Positions 6,563-18,400 of a stretch of DNA of 64,000 nt are shown piece by piece (position 1 is the first letter of the stretch; each line of letters opens with the position of its first letter). Source of the stretch: Lepidodermella squamata (taxonomy: Eukaryota; Animalia; Gastrotricha). A program made the position numbers and the translations under genes. The notes beneath the pieces were generated by a model. The model did not search any database. It saw only the letters and a program-made list of their open reading frames with translations, and was not told where the DNA came from. The stretch covers positions 3,286,001-3,350,000 of the forward strand of contig JBLDXI010000042.1 of the NCBI GenBank assembly GCA_047495785.1, given 5' to 3'.

Positions 6563-8260
6563 TTATTGAGGCTTGAGGGTTCCAAAAATCAGGCTGCTGC
6601 CGCCACCTGTTTCACCGCAATGAATCTTGATAGCATCATCGGTCTTCGACGGCTCATAGTTAACGAATTGACTGAGGAGAGTAACAGGAAAATAGAATTT
6701 TCCATGAACCTCCAGGACCATGCTACTTCCCTTCTCGAAAAACGTTGAAGAAGGCAACAGTTGAACTGTAACAGTCTCTGGAGTGTTCGGTTTCAACGGT
6801 ACCAATTTATCAAACGGTTTGTCCGCGTTCCATGGCTCATGTTCCGGGTAAGAATCGTACGGCTTGCGCAATGCGATTCGCTGCCAGCCCTTGGTAACTA
6901 CGTCCAGGCCCCAGCCATTCATGCCCTCGAAATTGACCTCATTGCCTTGCGGGTCATACTTCCTGACACACACGAATAGATTGCCGTCCTCAGCTGTTTC
7001 AGACGAAATCAAAAGGTTAGCTTTCATCGGCCCCGAAACAATAGTATCTTCATCAAACGTGTGCTTGAACGAAGCTGAGCTGCTCAGGAGATGGAACGAA
7101 ACAATTTTATCTTCCAGCTTAGCCTTCGAATCAGCAACTTTCATCGTTCTATCTCCGTGGAGGCTGAATTTAATCCAAGTGGTCTGCTTCACTGGGTAAG
7201 CAGGTTCCTTGAATTTCAAAACGGAGTGAACATGGCTGCTTTGGTCGACAACTTCAACGCGAACTCGCGGGACGTCTAGCATTCCGTTGCCTGTTTCACC
7301 CTTTAGGAAGTGGCTGAAAAACTTCAGTTGCAGGGCGAGGCTTTCTTCGCTGTAGTAAATGGCCCATTTTCCTTTACGATGTGTGTAAAGCCATTTGTGT
7401 TCGGAACTAATGGTTCTAAACACACGGAACGAACCCTGCGTGTGCAGGCCCTGATCCGAGTAGCTCATGCACACCAAAGCTGGGCACTTGATGTTTGCCA
7501 GGTTAGGCGCCTTCGACAGGTAAAATTTATCGTTGCGGGTTTCGTGCTTCACCTGCAGGGCACGGGTGTCCTCGAGGTTGTTTTCTCTTATGCTCTTACA
7601 CCAGATCTCCATGAACCCGTCTTCGCGAATTCCACCGGGAAGAGCGACGTCTTTGTAGAAGTCAGAAAAACCCTCCCATGGGCAAATCGCTTTCAGATGA
7701 GGTGGCTGGAGAGCCGCTACCTTGTATTGACTGATAGCCAGATAAGATACTCCATTCAGACCAACTTTGCCACTGCACCATGGCTGTTTCGCGATCCATT
7801 CAATAGCATCGTAGTAGTCCTCGGCTTCTTTGTCAGAGCAGGGGATGGGTATTTTTTCGTTCGACTTCGACTTGCCGTAACCTCGAATGTCCAAGTTAAT
7901 GACGTTAAAGCCGTGAGGGACCCAAAATGCCGGGTCAGGCGCTTCCCACCCGCAACCTTCAGACATGACGACATGATTATCCACGCGGATAACTCTGTAC
8001 TGCTTAGGGACTGAATTGAAAACCCAGCCTCGCTTAGGCAAATTATCCTTCGAATAAGGATGGGCAGACATGATGACAGGTCGCGGCTCCTTGAGACCTT
8101 CCACGCCAGGTGGCCGATAAAGATTAGCATACAAAGTGGCGCCATCTCTCATCGGTATGGCTATGTCGAGATCGGCATAAACACCATTAGGCAGTGGGAT
8201 GATAGTCACGTTAGGCTTGATAATTCGAAAAAGTCGGTCAAGGGAATACCAGAGAGGCAT
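6563..8260 (-). CDS. Intronless CocE/NonD-family (peptidase S15 / alpha-beta) serine hydrolase, 565 aa
   Basis: MRDGATLYANLYRP N-terminal motif, WEAPDPAFW, D.RGYG.S, WCSGKVGLNGVSYLA nucleophile elbow, SDQGLH (Asp), WLYTHRKGKW (His), C-terminal PepX_C-like jelly-roll (GP.....ISS...D.NLFV, P.ST.F.KG.S..LEV). Confidence 0.93.
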   Translation of the reverse strand: MPLWYSLDRLFRIIKPNVTIIPLPNGVYADLDIAIPMRDGATLYANLYRPPGVEGLKEPRPVIMSAHPYSKDNLPKRGWVFNSVPKQYRVIRVDNHVVMSEGCGWEAPDPAFWVPHGFNVINLDIRGYGKSKSNEKIPIPCSDKEAEDYYDAIEWIAKQPWCSGKVGLNGVSYLAISQYKVAALQPPHLKAICPWEGFSDFYKDVALPGGIREDGFMEIWCKSIRENNLEDTRALQVKHETRNDKFYLSKAPNLANIKCPALVCMSYSDQGLHTQGSFRVFRTISSEHKWLYTHRKGKWAIYYSEESLALQLKFFSHFLKGETGNGMLDVPRVRVEVVDQSSHVHSVLKFKEPAYPVKQTTWIKFSLHGDRTMKVADSKAKLEDKIVSFHLLSSSASFKHTFDEDTIVSGPMKANLLISSETAEDGNLFVCVRKYDPQGNEVNFEGMNGWGLDVVTKGWQRIALRKPYDSYPEHEPWNADKPFDKLVPLKPNTPETVTVQLLPSSTFFEKGSSMVLEVHGKFYFPVTLLSQFVNYEPSKTDDAIKIHCGETGGGSSLIFGTLKPQ

Positions 8261-9149: not shown

Positions 9150-10250
9150 CAGAACTCACTATTAGCTCGAAGTTAGCAGAATAATTCCAGCCGAATAACT
9201 GCGAACAACTGAATGAGATCGAGAAAATCGACCGTCCTCGAACCGGCTTCGATTTCCACCCTTTGTCTTCAAATGATTACTCAGGTGATTCAATGATACA
9301 GTTGTCTGCGTTGTCAGCAATTTGGCCACCTGACACGGAACTGCTTGAATGAAGATCGCTGTCTAATATGCGGCCGAAATTTTGTTTGCGATTTGGCCAC
9401 TGTTGCAATTGTGGCGATGGGAGTCTTGCAAACTCGAGGGTTCAACCTCGGTTCACAAGGACAATCAAGACAGGACAATCTAACGAAACCCTAGAGTTGA
9501 TGCGACTGCATAAAATTGGGAAAACTTCTAAGGAACGGGTAGTTGGGATCCTTAATGGTTGTTGTTGGTCAGGCTGTCACCTTGATGGAGGCGGAGGGTT
9601 GGTTGAGACGTACTAATATCGTAATAAATCCCTGTTTTTATACAAATTTCACTGCGCCATATGCCCCTCGTGTTTCAACCAAAATGTCGCCCAGGAGTTT
9701 AGGATGTTGAATGCGCTCGGCTTTCCCCGTCATCACCCGCCTAATCGCCTATAAATTCTCGCCTGCCATTGGTACTACCGCCCCCTTTGCTGGACTGATC
9801 ACGTCCTTCTCTGACCTAATTGTTTGCTGTTTAATAGCTCTGCGTCCTTCGTCTTCCTGCCTTCCACTTTATCGTCTAGTTTATTCCTTGCATCTGCCTT
9901 TCTTTCGCCCGGACTGTGCTTTCTTGTTCCTACTCCTCCCTCTCATTCTCTCCTTCTGCTTTCATCTCATCACTGTCTGCCCTCTTTACTGCTGAGGCTG
10001 ATAAACTAACTCCGCGTGTGATAAAATTCCCAATGCTGCTGCCTCGCATCTGCCTCCTTCTTCGACAAGCGCCCTATCTCTGCGCCATATCAAATCCGAA
10101 AAGTCATCATCATTTTTACCGTTTTCCAACCGTTTTCTTGTTTATCTCTATCGGCATTTCACTTTTGGTTCATATAACTTTATCTCGCTGTCATGATGAT
10201 CTGCCAAAACCAAACTGTCAAGCGATGGCTTAGCAATTTTCCCGCCGCTC
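9150..10250 (-). mobile_element. Possible highly decayed LTR-retrotransposon gag/pro remnant
   Basis: Minus strand is purine-rich with broken charged ORFs, MTGKAERI, a degenerate knuckle RHNCNSGQIANK and a protease-like VEIEAGSRTVDFLD; many stops. Confidence 0.3.
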
Positions 10251-10328
10251 TCTGGACAAAATCTGCTGTTAATTGGATTAAAAGCTCATCAGATTTCGCC
10301 AAAAACATCTAAGCGAAACAGTTTTTAA

Positions 10329-10879
10329 ATGGAAAGTGTTGTCATCACTATGATATTCACGCTGAGCTGGTTGATATATCGTCCAATAGTATCGGCTGAT
10401 GCTGCTCCGATAATTCTTCAGTCACTTGGCTTCGAGAATAATAATACAAATAATGAATCCGCCATTGTTATGGCTCCTGAGGATTCCCTTAATGGTGCAT
10501 CCAAGTCCGAGATAGTTCAAGTTTTGGTGGAGAAGTGGAATTCGACTAGGAGAGAAGCCCATCAGCAGAAAAAGCGTGGCCAACATCCTTTCTCAAGTAA
10601 GTTGAACTTTACGAAGCTTAGCCGACTGCTCTCATAGTTGCCTAAACTTATCCTGCAGGTCAAATCGCAAGGTCTTTGATGGACAACAACGTTGATGAGA
10701 TGAGGCGACTGTCTCGGAGAATGCATCAGGCTGAAAGGAAGTGCCGCTACGAATTGTGCATGGTTATTTTCTACCAGTCACGCGCGATTTGCTCCGGCGA
10801 AGGGGCGTTTTACATGTGGGCACAATCGATCGCTAGGCAGATTCTTAACCGACCTTGCGAAAGTCATATTTCCTCGTAA
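10329..10879 (+). CDS. Secreted 4-Cys helical protein family, paralog P1; exons 10329-10596, 10659-10879
   Basis: Signal-peptide-like N-terminus, KKR dibasic site, phase-1 intron, C-terminal MRRLSRRMHQAERKCRYELC...ICSGEGAFYMWAQSIARQILNRPC shared with four paralogs. Confidence 0.85.
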
Positions 10880-11430
10880 AACCGGAACTGAAATGAAGTT
10901 TCGGCGGCAACTTTTTTCGTGCAACGCTTTCCTCTTTCCGTACAACGCAAAATATCTCTTACGCATAACATGCGGTTAAACCTTTGAAAGCACCTTTGAA
11001 AGGCCCGGAAATGTGCAACCTGAAATATCGCTGAATTTCTTGAAACCTTTTGTTGTATATCTCCCAACTGTACAAACGCATTATCTATTTGTGTACAACA
11101 GGCTTTTATTATTAGTAGTAAACATGAGTAAAGATCCCCAAATCGTGCAAAATATTTGCCACAACATGGTCGACTATTTTGTCACAAAACACATGGCCGG
11201 CCGAATTTGCCTGTCCAGTTTCTTTCATTCGATATTTCATTCGAAATTATGAAACTCATCGTTTCCGCGTTTAACTTGATAACAAACTTCATTCGGCTTT
11301 ATTGGTTAAAGTTGGCTTAAATGCAAACTGGCGCGGAAATAAACTCACTCAACGTAAAAAGTGAGCTTGAACTTTCGTGTAACTAGAGTTAAAAATTGAG
11401 TATAAATCATGATTTCGTATGCGCGCATAT

Positions 11431-11460
11431 GGTGTGTGTGCGTGTGTGTGTGCGCGCGCA
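11431..11460. repeat. (TG)n/(CG)n microsatellite
   Basis: ggtgtgtgtgcgtgtgtgtgtgcgcgcgca. Confidence 0.7.
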
Positions 11461-11607
11461 CTCTTCCGCTCGACTCACTTTTTGACTCGAGAGAAGCGCG
11501 CAGAGTCGTCAGCGCACTCGCTTTTTAAGCGCGCAACCATACTCATTTTTTTTCTTCATCAGTTTGGAAGATAACCGTGCAAAAATTAGCCTGCGCTGAG
11601 TACGAAC

Positions 11608-11812
11608 ATATAGTTAGCATCGTTGAATACTTAACTCGGATTTACGGCTGTTTGCGTCAGTTTGAAAGTGTGTGGTGACAAGTAAAAATTCATATGTTTT
11701 TGCTTCTTCACTCGCGTCTAAAAACGCCGCTTTCTACTTGCCACCCATCACCTTCAACCGGATGTAAACAAGCCTTGTTATCCGAGTTATTAATCGATGC
11801 TAACTACGATAT
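11608..11812. mobile_element. MITE family X copy 1 (~75-bp imperfect TIRs)
   Basis: atatagttagcatcgttgaata..actcggat / atccgagttattaatcgatgctaactacgatat; homologous to 16331-16525. Confidence 0.8.
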
Positions 11813-12722
11813 CAGTGTGTTCCTTTCAACCTCCTCTCTCTGGTACCGTCGAACAATTGACGGGAAAAATCAAAACGGCATCAGAGCCAACACAATCGAA
11901 TATTTTTGCTTACCATGCTGTTGATGAATCAGCTGAGCATCCGGCGCCCACGTGGTGTTACACCCCTTTTCTCGTGAGCAGGCGTGAATTATATCGATGA
12001 GCAAGTGTGTTGAGTTAGAAAGGTCCTGCCCCTGATTAAGCCCCCTGTATACGCCGGATGTTGAGATGATTCAGCATGGAGATGGCATGAATTGGTTGAA
12101 AAGTCAACAAACCATGTGCTTGTTCCAAGCAAATTTTTAGCCCTAATTTGTCTAAAACACCGTTCAATGTCATAATTATCATGCGAATCGGCTTAGGGTT
12201 ATGACATAAATTTGCATTTTAGACACATTCGGGCACTTCGAAATACTTCCAGAAATGTCGGCTATGGACAATAAATTTTAACAAATTTTGGACGCTAGAT
12301 TTTCTCAACACTCGCCCTAATTAAGTGACAGACATTTGAAATTCCCGCGCTAAAAGGCCTATTCATTACTAGAAAATTGCCTAACCGACATTTTGATCTC
12401 ATTTCGTTCTCGATTAGCGTTCGCCAGACAGTTTTGGGAACATGTTATACTCACCAATGTTTAAATGTCAACAGCGTTTTTATTCATTTAAAGAAATACA
12501 ACGTTAAAATTCTATAAGTATATATTGAGAAGATAAGTTGCGGCCATTGCCGCTCATTCAGCTAGGTATATATCAGTTCATTACTTGAGATGGCAACGCA
12601 CTCATTAGTGCAATGTTTAATCAGGTCACACCGCTAATAAATTTCATAAAATGATGACAACAAGTAAAGATTTTTCCCCACCCTAATATCTGGCACCGGA
12701 ATGTTGTGAAACAACATGCTGA

Positions 12723-13620
12723 TCACGTTGAAACATCAGAACTCACAACAGCTCCCTCACATTTGAGGAAACTGTTAATAGTGATGATTGAAGGCGAAAA
12801 GCGGACAGTTTTTTTCTTGTGCGAGGGCGAAAAATAGCCGTTATCTTCATTTTGACTGTCACTATCAAGCCTTTCACGGCGTCTTTCGTTAGGCTCGGTT
12901 CCGAATGTCGTAATTGAGGTGACGGTTTTATTATCCTTCGGATAAGCGTTCGCAACATTGACTAATGAGCTCCTGAAAAAATCGAAAAAATTATTTCCAA
13001 TAATTAAGGTGGATTTTTTACTAATTTACCTTGATGAAAGACGCTTTGGCAGAGTTGCAGGGCCTTTGACTTGAACTTGAGCAAGCTTGTCGATTTGTTG
13101 ACTCAATACAGTGCTATTGAATAGGGCGAGGCCCATGTCGTAGATTGGCGGCAGTTTTGACGGGATGGCGTAGGCACTGTCCAGGTACATGAGAAGGTCA
13201 CGAATCGAGGTCATGGCCATTTTGAAATCATTCAGAGCCAAGGTCACGTTGGTTCTAGTTGTCTCACTCGAATCTTTTTCCAACTTTGCTTTAAGCTGGG
13301 AAAATTACGGAAAATTATTGGATTTTCAAGGTTTAATTAATTTTTTTTACCTTTTCAACGTGATCGGTGAGAATGATTTTGATTCCGTCGTAGAGAAATA
13401 GGCCCCTTTTCAGGCTGACAGCTTTATAAGCTGCTCGATAGACGGCCTCGAAGCAGATGGAAGATAGATTTTTCGCTAATATACTCCGAACTGCCTTATA
13501 AATGACATTTTCCCAGGGTCCGGCATTGTCGCCACTTTTGCCACTCTTCTGGCCGCCATTTCCAGCCTTCAAAATCGCGCGAAATGACGCGCTGCGAGTC
13601 ATTATTCGTTGGCCATCCAT
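12723..13620 (-). CDS. Truncated Cullin-3-like protein (first cullin repeat only, plus unrelated tail); exons 13620-13351, 13295-13030, 12972-12723; ~260 aa
   Basis: WENVIYKAVRSILAKNLSSICFEAVYRAAYKAVSLKRGLFLYDGIKIILTDHV and NDFKMAMTSIRDLLMYLDSAY...IYDMGLALF mirror the CUL3 segments LSFEELYRNAY..V..KHGEKLY and NDH..AM.MIRDILMYMDR.Y; stop follows shortly, no cullin-homology/Nedd8 domain. Confidence 0.8.
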
Positions 13621-15473
13621 GATTGATGCTTATAGATGTTAGAGACGAACGAAATATATGTAACCGAAAGTTCAAATGAACGCGCAATATTTGTTAATGA
13701 TGAATATGACCTTAGACAAATGGTCACGCATGATCTACAATATAGAGCATGGTCATGAATAATAAGGAAGAATACAAAAGCATGCCATACACGTGAAAAA
13801 GTGTGTTCAAGGAGTGAATCTAATTTTAACATGCCGCGCGGATTTTTTTGCAGGCTTTACCTCATATATATGAATGAGTGCGAATTCGAAATTGTCCGTT
13901 AGGAACAAATTCTGTCGTCAAAACAAACAAATACCACTTGATATACCTACAGGTCGATATAAATGGCGATTTTCAGCTAAATCGTTGTTGTGGCCTCAAT
14001 CTCCGCCATGCATATTATATCAAATTTTGCGAGATTTAAGCCTCCTATTGAAAACTGCCGCCCCTTAATCCAGCCTAATAAATACTATAACGCACCTTTA
14101 ATTGAGTGTGCGCCTTAATTATTTTTGAGAATATAGCGCTCATTTCTGAATGCTGCAGGGCATTTTTAAGGCTATTTACGCCCATGCAGTACAATATTTA
14201 GGTTTTTAAATTTATAAATATCTTAGCAACAAAAATTGTAGCTCAAACGCGGACGAATTTAGGATGTAGAAAAAATGGTTTATGCGAAAATACTGGTTCG
14301 TGGCTTTTTTCACCTAGGTAGAGGTAGTATATAGTATTATCTATCTATTCCCTGACTAATAATTTCACGGGCAAAAATTAGATGCGAAATTATCACATCC
14401 ATGTCGTGACTCGCTATCATTAAAAACGACGTTTTTTTTACGCTCACTCACTCTCTCTCTCGTTATTCGCCCCACAAGGTGCGAGCTGGCTAATAACCTT
14501 ATACGTTGTATAGTATTATAATATTTGCAACATTAAATGCCCTCTATATTTACATTAGCGTAGGCGAGACCTAGAGTGCGAAAAATTTTCGTCATAGGTT
14601 ATTCCACGGGTTCCTACCTACGTCGATTTCCAGTGAAAATCCGGTAAAAAACAGAATGATAATTTTCAAAAATAAATCAGGCAGAAATTTGGTAATTGAT
14701 GGCAATTAATAATTGTTGACATTCCTAATGTATTTGGCTCATTAGGATGATAAACATTTTATTTCGCCTCGGGCATCAATTTATTTAGTGCCTCTGAAAT
14801 TTTTTGAGCCAACCTACTTATTGCGTCTATCAAGCTTGGCAAATTACTACCTAATTTAAAATATTTCTGGATCATTTTTAATGACATTTTTTGAAAAATT
14901 ATGGAAAACAGAAAATAGCTAAAGAATTATCCAGAAAATTTATCTATAATGGAAACAACGAATCAGTTGATGAGTGAATGATGAAATGTGTTGCTCAGAG
15001 GAAATAACAAAACGGCGCAGGATGATCTCGGCGACGTGTCTTAACGATTTTCAATCAGGCTTGACGTCGAGGCTCTCGATCACCCTGCTGATTCAATTAT
15101 AGCCGCGGATCAAGTGCCCAGACAATTAAACTCAGCACGGATAAGCTCTGATTAATATTAACGAACGGACAATAATCCCCGCTTTCGAATCGATTTTTTT
15201 ATTATAGAGCCGCTAAATGCCGATATGGTTTTGTTTTTCGCTATATAATTTAATATTAATAAGTGTTTCCAAGTTGTTTTGAACAGAGAACAAATTTCCC
15301 ACAATCAAACATTTTTCGAGTTTTTTTCGAATAATAATAATCAAACTGTTGAGTTCGCATTTTTTCAAATAAATCGGAAATAAATTGTCGCAGTAAAATC
15401 ACCGAAAGATCAGCTCAAACTGTCAGTTTATTTTTTGTTGTTGTCAACGTAAAACCTATTATGGTAAATATCT

Positions 15474-18400
15474 TCACGCGGCGATGACTTGCTCCTTGTT
15501 TTCGTCGTTGAAATTGCTGCTAGCCGCTGCCAGGTCTGCTAGAAGGGAAATATCGTCGTTCGGCGTATCGATCGAAACAGTTGACGACGAGTTGCTTCGA
15601 CTGTCCGACTGGTGGTTGCTTTTCGCAAATCTATGATTGCCAATCGTCAGGCTGCTGAATGACTCGGCAATTGACGACGAGCCGCCGCCGCCTTCAACTT
15701 TTCGGTTTCCGATGTTGACGAAAACCGCTGATCTGTTTTGTTGATCGACGAGTGGCTGCTTGGCGTTGTTTTCGGATGATTCTGAAATTTCGTCGACTTT
15801 TTTAACGACCAGTGACGGGACTTGGACAGATTGGCTACGCATCGGTCCGCTTGGCGGTAGTCCCAAATTGGCGCCGGCGTATGAACCTTGACGGTTGGCG
15901 AAAGAGAAATGGTCCTTCGATTCACCTTAGTAAAAGGAAAAGCGAAATAATTCAAACTCAAGGCACATATAATGTCCCATAAATTTGCCTATAAATCAAT
16001 CGATAGTTCCATAAATCAATTTATCAAATTTTGGCTGAGGCGAAGCAGCCGAACATTTTTAGCGAGAAAATCACAAATTTGAATGCGAACTAGGAAAACG
16101 ACAGTTTCGGAAGTTTTAGGAATTTTTCGCCAAGTTCATTAAAATGCAAAAATGCCGTCCAAATCGTTGACCGAACCAAACCGAACATTTCGTTCGGCCA
16201 GGATTAAAATATATCGACGTTGCAAAAAAACCCTAAAAATGCGTTAGACGAAGTTGGCCGAACATTTTTGAGAAAGATGAAATAGTTCGGCCAAGTTTGA
16301 CCACGCCCGAAAATGTTTGACCACATCTCAATATCGTTAGCAACGTTGAATAACTCGGATTTAGGCATGTTTACATGTGTTTCAAGGTTAGAGGTGACAA
16401 CTAAAAAGTCTCTTGTTTTGCCTCTTCGTTCATGTTAAAAAACTCTACTATTTACTTGTCACCCCTCACCTTGAAACGGATGTAAACAAGCCTAAATCCG
16501 AGTTATTCAACGTCGCTAACGATATGTTCGCCCAAGTTCGACCAGGCCAAACGTGTTCCGACTAGGTTCGGCCAAACAAAATTATCTTCGACTATAGGTT
16601 CGACTAACCCGAGCCGATAGATTCAAACAGGCCAAAACAGCTTCGGCTAGGTTCCAACAAGCTAAAAAAGCTTCGACTAGGTTCGACCAAGCTGAAACAG
16701 GTTCGACTAGGTTTGACTAACCGGTGCCGATACTGGGGCCGCAAATTCGAAAACTCTAAAACTTAGCTTTGAACTTGGAACTTGAAAAACCATATTTTAG
16801 GGAAATCTAGAACTGGAGCCTTAAACTGAGTGCTGGAACCCGAAATTTAGGATGTGTCCCAGACAATCTCATCTTATATCTAATTCTGAATAATAAAATT
16901 GAGATCATTTGAGGGCTTTTCTATCCCCGCAATTTCGCATTTGAGCTGGGAAAGTTAGCACCAACTTTCGCTTTATCGGAACTCCAATTTTTAGCTCAAT
17001 TCTAGCGCTACTAGGAAATGTCTTGTAAATTGAGCCCCGCAGCCCTTGTCATTTCGAAATTATATATCTTACCAAAGGAAAAATGTTGTCTTACCTTTAA
17101 GTTGGCTTCGCTGGGTGAAAACAGGAGCGTTGGGCTGCAATTTGCTGTTCTGTTGCTGCCACGAGCCGTTCGACATTTGCTGGAAAAACGACTGGTAAGT
17201 CGCGCGATTGGCCACCTGTTGCTGGCGGAAATTGTTGAAATTAATCGTGGTGCCCGACGCGAGTTGCATCGAACTCTGGCTCTGCGTTGTAGTCGCACTG
17301 GTCCCAGTTAACCCAGCCGTTGAATTTGAGTTGATCACCTGAAGAGCGGGCCACATTTTGTGAAAAGCCGCCAAATGAGCTCCAGTCACCTGATGGTTAT
17401 TGCCAGCCATCAGCGATGCGAACGGGTTTTGAAGCATTTGAGGCGGAACCGCGGATTGCGGCAAACGATTCTGCGCGACCAGTGGGACCTTTTGCTGGTG
17501 GTTCTTATTCTCACCCAGCGACATGATCAATTGATGAATATTCGACGGGGAAGGCGTGGGAGAGGGCGGCGGAGGTGGAGGCGCTTGATTTTTATTGGAA
17601 AGGTTAGGATGCTGGGCGCCAGGAACCATAAGATGGGCAGGCGGCTGATCCCAACGAGTCGGCTTCCTAGGCCTTGGAGCCGCTTCTGGTAGTTTAACCT
17701 GAACCGGGCCAGCTGGAACCGGCGACTTATTCGACCCAGTTTTCACGGACGAAACGCCATTCGAGTACAAAATGGTTGTAGTCCCGCTCGGGGATCCGCT
17801 AACATGGTGCCTTTTAGTCGATAAAGCCAGCCTGTGACTTTCCTGGATGTTTAGCAGAAGCAATTCGATGAGCGGAGCTTTGTCGTATTCAGCGCTGATG
17901 AGATCACGAATTTGGCGAACGATGTTGGAATATTCATGAGCTGATCGGGCCAAAAGGTCAGACGACAAGCTGTTGAGAAGCAATTCGAGTTGCTGCTTGG
18001 AATCGATTGGTTCCAGCTTCATAGGCTGCCATCCATTCTAAAATTTGCCATAAAAAAGTAAAAATAATTCAATTAATAATAAATAAATTATTTCATTTCT
18101 TCTTAATTAATCAATTTTTTAGATTTTTTTATGAATTGATTTTAACCTTTTTCGCCTGAAGGATTAAGCTGGCCAAAGTTTTCATGCGCTGCGAGAACGA
18201 AGCCGATTGAGCAATATCGGTGAGTTCTTCGCAGAAATTAGCCCACCATTCAATCATAGCCTTGGCGAGAACCTGGACTTCAAACTCGCGTCCGATACGG
18301 TTCAGCAGTTCCGCTAAGCATTCAAGCGCATCTTCGGTTTTCCGCGCTAACAATGAATCTGTCAGCGACAGCAGAAACGTGAAGTTGATATGCTTCATGT

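Follow-up and report, generated by a model that had tools for sequence, protein, structure and literature searches.

CACUL1 (also named CAC1) of vertebrates is similar to cullins in their N-terminal part only and possesses neither a RING-binding nor a neddylation domain (PMC13015453). The protein is reported to bind BTB proteins and to associate with Cul3-Keap1, which is not dissolved by this association, and to lower the ubiquitination of Nrf2 (PMC4523873; also PMC13015453). C-terminally truncated Cul3 serves as the standard laboratory dominant negative and engages adaptors and substrates in stable dead-end complexes (PMC5574712).

Here we report on a gene in a 64-kb stretch of genomic DNA (called the window below, by which the whole stretch analysed is meant) that is a real, expressed cullin reduced to its adaptor-binding first repeat. 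As far as its sequence tells, the protein belongs to a kind that is already known, since CACUL1 is likewise a natural cullin-N-terminus-only protein devoid of a RING-binding or neddylation domain, and the functional logic that we propose would be alike; what appears to be new, in a comparison with CACUL1 made by description only, is a sequence nearest to canonical Cul3, a shorter protein (261 aa, with ~125 aa of repeat 1) and an unrelated tail. The protein is also predicted to resemble the laboratory dominant-negative Cul3 in keeping the adaptor-binding N-terminus and in being unable to bind Rbx1 and an E2. The laboratory protein, in contrast, is an engineered fragment of a canonical cullin with all three repeats, whereas the present gene is natural and diverged and encodes one repeat followed by a novel tail.

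Gene structure and mature transcript

The gene is read from the minus strand and is composed of three exons. Exon 1 (13620-13351, minus strand) contains codons 1-90 (90 codons) and starts with an ATG at 13620-13618; exon 2 (13295-13030, minus strand) comprises 266 nt, that is, codons 91-178 plus 2 nt; and the coding part of exon 3 (12972-12723, minus strand) carries codons 179-261 and ends with a TGA at 12725-12723. All three were delimited by translation, and exon 3 by the spliced RNA contig as well. The two introns, 55 nt (13350-13296, minus strand, phase 0) and 57 nt (13029-12973, minus strand, phase 2) in length, both have GT..AG ends and were defined from the sequence together with the X1 RNA contig described below. 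Joining the exons by script gave a coding sequence of 786 nt, which was translated into 261 aa with no internal stop. The start codon has an A at -3 and a G at +4; 12 nt upstream of it there is a TAA in the same frame. The sequence-only reading had described an intact three-exon ORF with two CUL3-like helices and a basic motif in the last exon, and our translation found each of these elements where it had been placed: FEAVYRAAY at residues 57-65 (13426-13452, minus strand), IRDLLMYLD at residues 121-129 (13179-13205, minus strand) and HKKKTVRFSP at residues 230-239 (12792-12821, minus strand).

Two public sequencing runs, X1 and X2, contained this stretch (n = 2), and their contigs were placed on positions 10100-15900. 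X2 is a DNA run, and X1 is regarded as a transcriptome because a template-switch cDNA oligonucleotide was present at the ends of its contigs. A 918-nt X1 contig with a word depth of 62 covers 12466-12971, 13029-13295 and 13351-13473. It precisely skips intron 1 (13296-13350, with CT..AC ends on the plus strand) and leaves out 57 nt at intron 2, whose ends are canonical once the cut is moved by 1. Beyond position 12466 the contig continues with 22 T that are absent from the genome and represent the poly(A) of a minus-strand mRNA. This end lies 13 nt past an AATAAA signal (12479-12484), and the X1 contig thereby delimits a 3′ UTR of 257 nt (12466-12722, minus strand) with a poly(A) site at ~12466. 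Given the poly(A) tail at this position, the mRNA ends after exon 3. Both predicted joints and the poly(A) end are present in the X1 contig, so the last exon belongs to the mature mRNA, as had been anticipated, and the locus is expressed as a spliced, polyadenylated RNA. The transcript does not splice on to downstream cullin exons, the existence of which was ruled out by tblastn over all 64 kb as well as by the poly(A) end of the RNA contig.

At the 5′ side, exon 1 is covered by RNA contigs over 13351-13591, and the first 29 nt of the coding sequence (13592-13620, including the ATG) are without an RNA contig. Two allelic RNA contigs (13444-13591 and 13458-13591; ~95% alike, with depths of 28.6 and 34.2) both end at 13591, and the contig of the DNA run on the far side begins at 13562, i.e., at 13591 minus 29. 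The end at 13591 is not a sign of a transcript end, because an assembly with k = 31 breaks at the close of an allelic bubble. Such a bubble would also account for the break of the DNA-run contig at this place, which is why we consider it unlikely that the RNA contigs stop at a splice or trans-splice acceptor ('cag|C' at 13592). The next in-frame Met after the start codon is residue 116; it would come into play if the mRNA began downstream of 13600, which we consider unlikely.

Two other genes were observed nearby. The upstream neighbour, on the minus strand from 15399-15900 on to ~21200, has several exons and is expressed, as shown by an 832-nt X1 contig of depth 46; its ORF pieces of 124-317 aa are rich in Gln, Pro and Ser and matched no Pfam family. 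The cullin gene is followed 4.5 kb downstream, at 6563-8260 (minus strand), by an intronless ORF of 565 aa that combines the domains Peptidase_S15 (E 7e-36) and PepX_C (E 8e-19).

Cullin identity of the head

Both of the first two exons matched the Pfam family PF00888 (Cullin), exon 1 with an E value of 1.9e-4 over profile positions 3-56 and exon 2 with an E value of 9.5e-9 over positions 69-127, the latter scoring 35.0 bits against a gathering cut-off of 33.2. When compared with solved structures, exon 1 matched, among cullins, human CUL3 only (residues 36-85, E 8e-5), and the best match of exon 2 was human CUL3 as well (residues 105-152, E 2e-5), with CUL4B and CUL4A in second place (E 3.5e-4 to 7e-4). 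Neither exon had a match to Cul1, Cul2 or Cul5 among solved structures at E<=10. By sequence, the protein is therefore nearest to Cul3 among the cullins, and over residues 34-156 it shares 30-39% identity with Cul3-type N-termini.

The first 38 residues form a low-complexity N-terminus of Gly, Ser and Lys. Residues 39-90, encoded by exon 1, correspond to helices H1-H3 of cullin repeat 1, with the H2 segment ICFEAVYRAAYKAV at residues 55-68, and exon 2 encodes helices H4-H6 (the H5 segment being IRDLLMYLD) and the beginning of the helix after them. In alignment A1 the similarity stops ~10 residues past the start of the helix behind H6, near residue 165, such that the cullin-similar part spans residues ~36-165 and amounts to ~125 aa of cullin. 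Since the similarity ends just past H6, the protein is cullin repeat 1 and little more; the presence of this repeat with its helices H2 and H5 is documented by the Pfam and CUL3 alignments.

Cullin repeats 2-3 and the Rbx1-binding C-terminal cullin homology domain are absent, as judged by tblastn, Pfam and the end of the mRNA, and so is the neddylation site (WH-B domain, PF10557), the protein stopping at residue 261 in an unrelated tail. A tblastn search of the 64 kb with 22 cullin sequences, three of which were 561-681 aa long, revealed cullin similarity only at 13071-13626. The proposal that only the N-terminus of a cullin is encoded here was thus borne out, with no C-terminal cullin domain in the mRNA or elsewhere in the 64 kb. 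Relative to canonical Cullin-3, which is its best sequence match and with which it shares the H2 and H5 signatures and most of the BTB-contact residues, the protein is missing repeats 2-3, the four-helix bundle, the alpha/beta domain, WH-B and the neddylation lysine. It further differs from Cullin-3 in that the identity is only 30-39% within a normally highly conserved region and in that L66 and R128 are substituted.

Relatives of the head

An exhaustive HMMER search with exon 2 against 1.84 billion representative proteins yielded 22 matches at E<=1e-3, the best of which showed 43% identity, and neither the protein itself nor a close orthologue was among them. Scans of metagenome contigs with exon 2 and with the exon 3 tail returned no relative, no meaningful match came from the ESM Atlas when exon 2 was searched by itself, and the whole window had no match in Rfam. 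The failure to find an orthologue is weak evidence for restriction to one lineage, because the protein collection lacks even the present protein.

The HMMER matches that were examined proved to be Cul3-type fragments, except for P0008, and no recognisable CACUL1 was present among the 22 HMMER matches or the solved-structure matches. P0008 (L002:6001-6693; also L003-L005), derived from Logan contigs, is a stand-alone ORF of 230 aa that contains cullin repeat 1 only, and its cullin similarity stops at the same helix as that of the present gene. It resides in the compact, intron-poor genome of an unrelated eukaryote, where it is followed by a TspO gene on the opposite strand. A word search with P0008 in 5.8 billion clusters retrieved only P0008 itself. 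P0008 is an independent repeat-1-only cullin, and it suggests that repeat 1 can stand alone. In two further HMMER matches, the Cul3-like proteins P0001 (336 aa) and P0002 (635 aa), there are two copies of the N-terminal repeat-1 segment, arranged in tandem or one at each end. Some animal may truly have duplicated its Cul3 head in tandem, or the copies may be artefacts of assembly.

These matches also bear on the idea that the gene is the CACUL1 (CDK2-associated cullin domain 1) of this animal, a true orthologue of the cullin-domain-only protein already known from metazoans. The nearest relatives of the present protein are canonical Cul3-type sequences with the signature IRD(I/L)LMY(L/M)D, whereas CACUL1 is not known to carry an IRDxLMYxD signature, and the cullin region here is ~125 aa long, compared with ~230 aa in CACUL1. 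Moreover, P0003 (in L001), the match whose context could be checked, derives from a full-length cullin transcript, of which it is a part. Orthology with CACUL1 is therefore quite improbable, in spite of the like architecture of the two proteins, i.e., similarity to the cullin N-terminus only, a low-complexity N-terminus and the lack of an Rbx1/Nedd8 part (PMC13015453).

Residues at the BTB-contact surface

Residues of the protein were mapped to the numbering of human CUL3 via the structure alignments of exon 1 and exon 2. In the H5 region, I119, R120, D121, M124, Y125, D127 and Y130 of human CUL3 are all kept, and R128 is replaced by Ser; on this helix, Y125 and R128 are what we take to be BTB contacts. 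In H2, F54, E55, Y58, R59 and Y62 are kept, and L52 is changed to I, S53 to C and L66 to S. The structure of KLHL3-Cul3 identified F54, Y58, Y62 and L66 as the H2 contacts to the BTB-BACK adaptor (PMC3616122), three of which (F54, Y58 and Y62) are thus retained in the present protein, the fourth, L66, being a Ser. The N-terminal extension of CUL3, which provides the 3-box grip, is at most vestigial in the Gly/Ser/Lys-rich first 38 residues. From these alignments it is plausible that the head binds BTB proteins, perhaps with an altered specificity.

The tail and its RVxF-type sequence

The tail comprises residues 166-261 (96 residues), 24 of which are Ser or Thr and 15 Lys or Arg, and contains an acidic Ser stretch; it is probably disordered, basic and Ser/Thr-rich. 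Exon 3 matched no Pfam family at E<=10 and exhibited no cullin similarity in any frame (tblastn). There is no second copy of exon 3 within the 64-kb window, and by this single-copy state an origin of the exon from a repeat or transposon was rejected. We also observed that an alternative frame of exon 3 (minus strand, 12743-12958) is open for 71 codons from an ATG, and no match to it was found. Because this second frame is open too, the length of the exon 3 ORF is weak evidence for selection on the tail; the frame that is actually used is set by the splice joint.

A regular-expression match placed KTVRF at residues 233-237 (12798-12812, minus strand), with HKK before it and SP after it. The sequence-only reading had taken it for a docking motif of the phosphatase PP1 and had raised the possibility of a rewired adaptor, in which the Cul3 head would sit on BTB adaptors and KTVRF would dock PP1, so that a phosphatase rather than an E2 would be brought to BTB-bound substrates. 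KTVRF indeed fits both the loose RVxF pattern, [RK]x(0,1)[VI]{P}[FW], and the stricter one, [HKR][ACHKMNQRSTV]V[CHKNQRST][FW]. In 20,000 shuffles, the strict pattern arose by chance in only 2.0% of the tails and in 2.4% of the whole proteins, and the loose pattern in 12.8% and 27.9%, respectively. The motif follows a basic run, lies in a segment that is rich in Ser, Thr, Lys and Arg and has no predicted domain, and is carried by a tail that belongs to the mature mRNA, all of which would suit such an adaptor. However, it was chosen post hoc among many possible short motifs, the loose pattern turns up by chance at rates of 13% (shuffled tails) and 28% (shuffled whole proteins), and the basic run might just as well function in nuclear localisation. 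Furthermore, the auxiliary PP1 motifs SILK and MyPhoNE are both absent from the protein, HMMER and the metagenome contigs provided no orthologue in which KTVRF could be seen to be conserved, and no known cullin-derived PP1 regulator was found in the literature searched. What the protein has in common with RVxF-type PP1-interacting proteins is therefore the K-x-V-x-F pattern behind basic residues in a low-complexity segment; in contrast to them, it shares this pattern alone, with no family kinship and no auxiliary motifs. The match to the pattern stood, docking to PP1 found no support beyond that pattern, and we regard the phosphatase adaptor as very improbable. If it were true, a BTB degradation adaptor system would have been naturally switched to dephosphorylation.

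Allelic variation and possible selection on the reading frame

The two alleles represented by the RNA contigs of exon 1 were also found in the DNA run X2. Four differences between the alleles were listed; those in codons 26, 35 and 40 are synonymous, and the fourth is A33S in the low-complexity N-terminus.

The allelic differences make up a heterozygosity hot spot in exon 1 (13474-13561), where the alleles differ at 6 positions in ~90-134 nt, and the remainder of the gene outside this hot spot shows no allelic differences. The two hot-spot alleles occur at about equal depth in the RNA run, which dates from 2015, and in the DNA run of 2024. This persistent two-allele state suggests either that the line is clonal or inbred and its heterozygosity fixed or that gene conversion has acted on a local tract. 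Two other sites differ between assemblies: position 12920 encodes Thr197 in the window assembly and Pro in X1 and X2, and position 12767 encodes Leu248 in the window and Ile in X1 alone. Both positions belong to the tail and leave KTVRF unaffected.

The locus could also be an expressed relic with no function, namely a partial 5′ duplicate of Cul3 that captured a splice acceptor and a poly(A) site lying downstream and now gives rise to RNA and protein. Such a relic would be in line with the lack of any detected orthologue or paralog (HMMER, metagenome contigs), with a tail devoid of a recognisable domain, with the loss of two interface residues (L66 and R128) and with the second open frame of exon 3. 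Against it, the sequence has diverged to 30-39% identity with Cul3-type sequences, and yet all 261 codons are open, both introns are canonical, and the hydrophobic core is kept together with most of the H2 and H5 signature residues. Its RNA level is also like that of the neighbouring gene (word depths in X1 of 62 for the 918-nt contig and 46 for the neighbour's contig, which are similar), both alleles are expressed, and the listed allelic differences are, in three of four cases, synonymous. An open reading frame and a helix core that persist at <40% identity argue for selection on a folded protein, and we consider the relic unlikely, though less so than orthology with CACUL1.

Discussion

We propose that the gene encodes a lineage-restricted, fast-diverged and non-catalytic Cul3 paralog that binds BTB adaptors, and we assign to this reading a probability of about 0.5. 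Because the remainder of the stalk and the C-terminal domain are missing, such a protein would be incapable of Rbx1 binding, neddylation and E2 recruitment. Through helices H2 and H5 it may still bind a subset of the BTB (or BTB/3-box) adaptors. BTB adaptors form dimers with sites for two Cul3 molecules, and a head-only protein could act as a non-catalytic competitor at one or both Cul3 sites of the dimer. As there are two such sites, occupation of one of them would leave a half-loaded and less active CRL3, an outcome that would parallel the effect reported for CACUL1 on Cul3-Keap1. The tail, with its basic cluster, CK2-like acidic Ser stretch and SP sites, may set the localisation or regulation of the protein.

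The earlier suggestion of a natural dominant-negative decoy of CRL3 ligases is accordingly retained in part. It is plausible in view of the residues kept (F54, E55, Y58, Y62 and Y125) and of the precedents provided by CACUL1 and dominant-negative Cul3; it is weakened by the substitutions L66S and R128S and by the ~125 cullin residues left, fewer than in the laboratory dominant-negative Cul3. At present, the gene model is well documented, and the function assigned to it is inferred.

If BTB binding by the Cul3 paralog proposed here is true, the gene would represent a natural, genome-encoded inhibitor or modulator of CRL3 that arose independently of CACUL1. It would then also be the smallest cullin fragment, a single repeat, to have been kept by evolution as a stand-alone protein. 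Such a protein would inform how CRL3 activity is tuned, and it could serve as a minimal BTB-binding tool.
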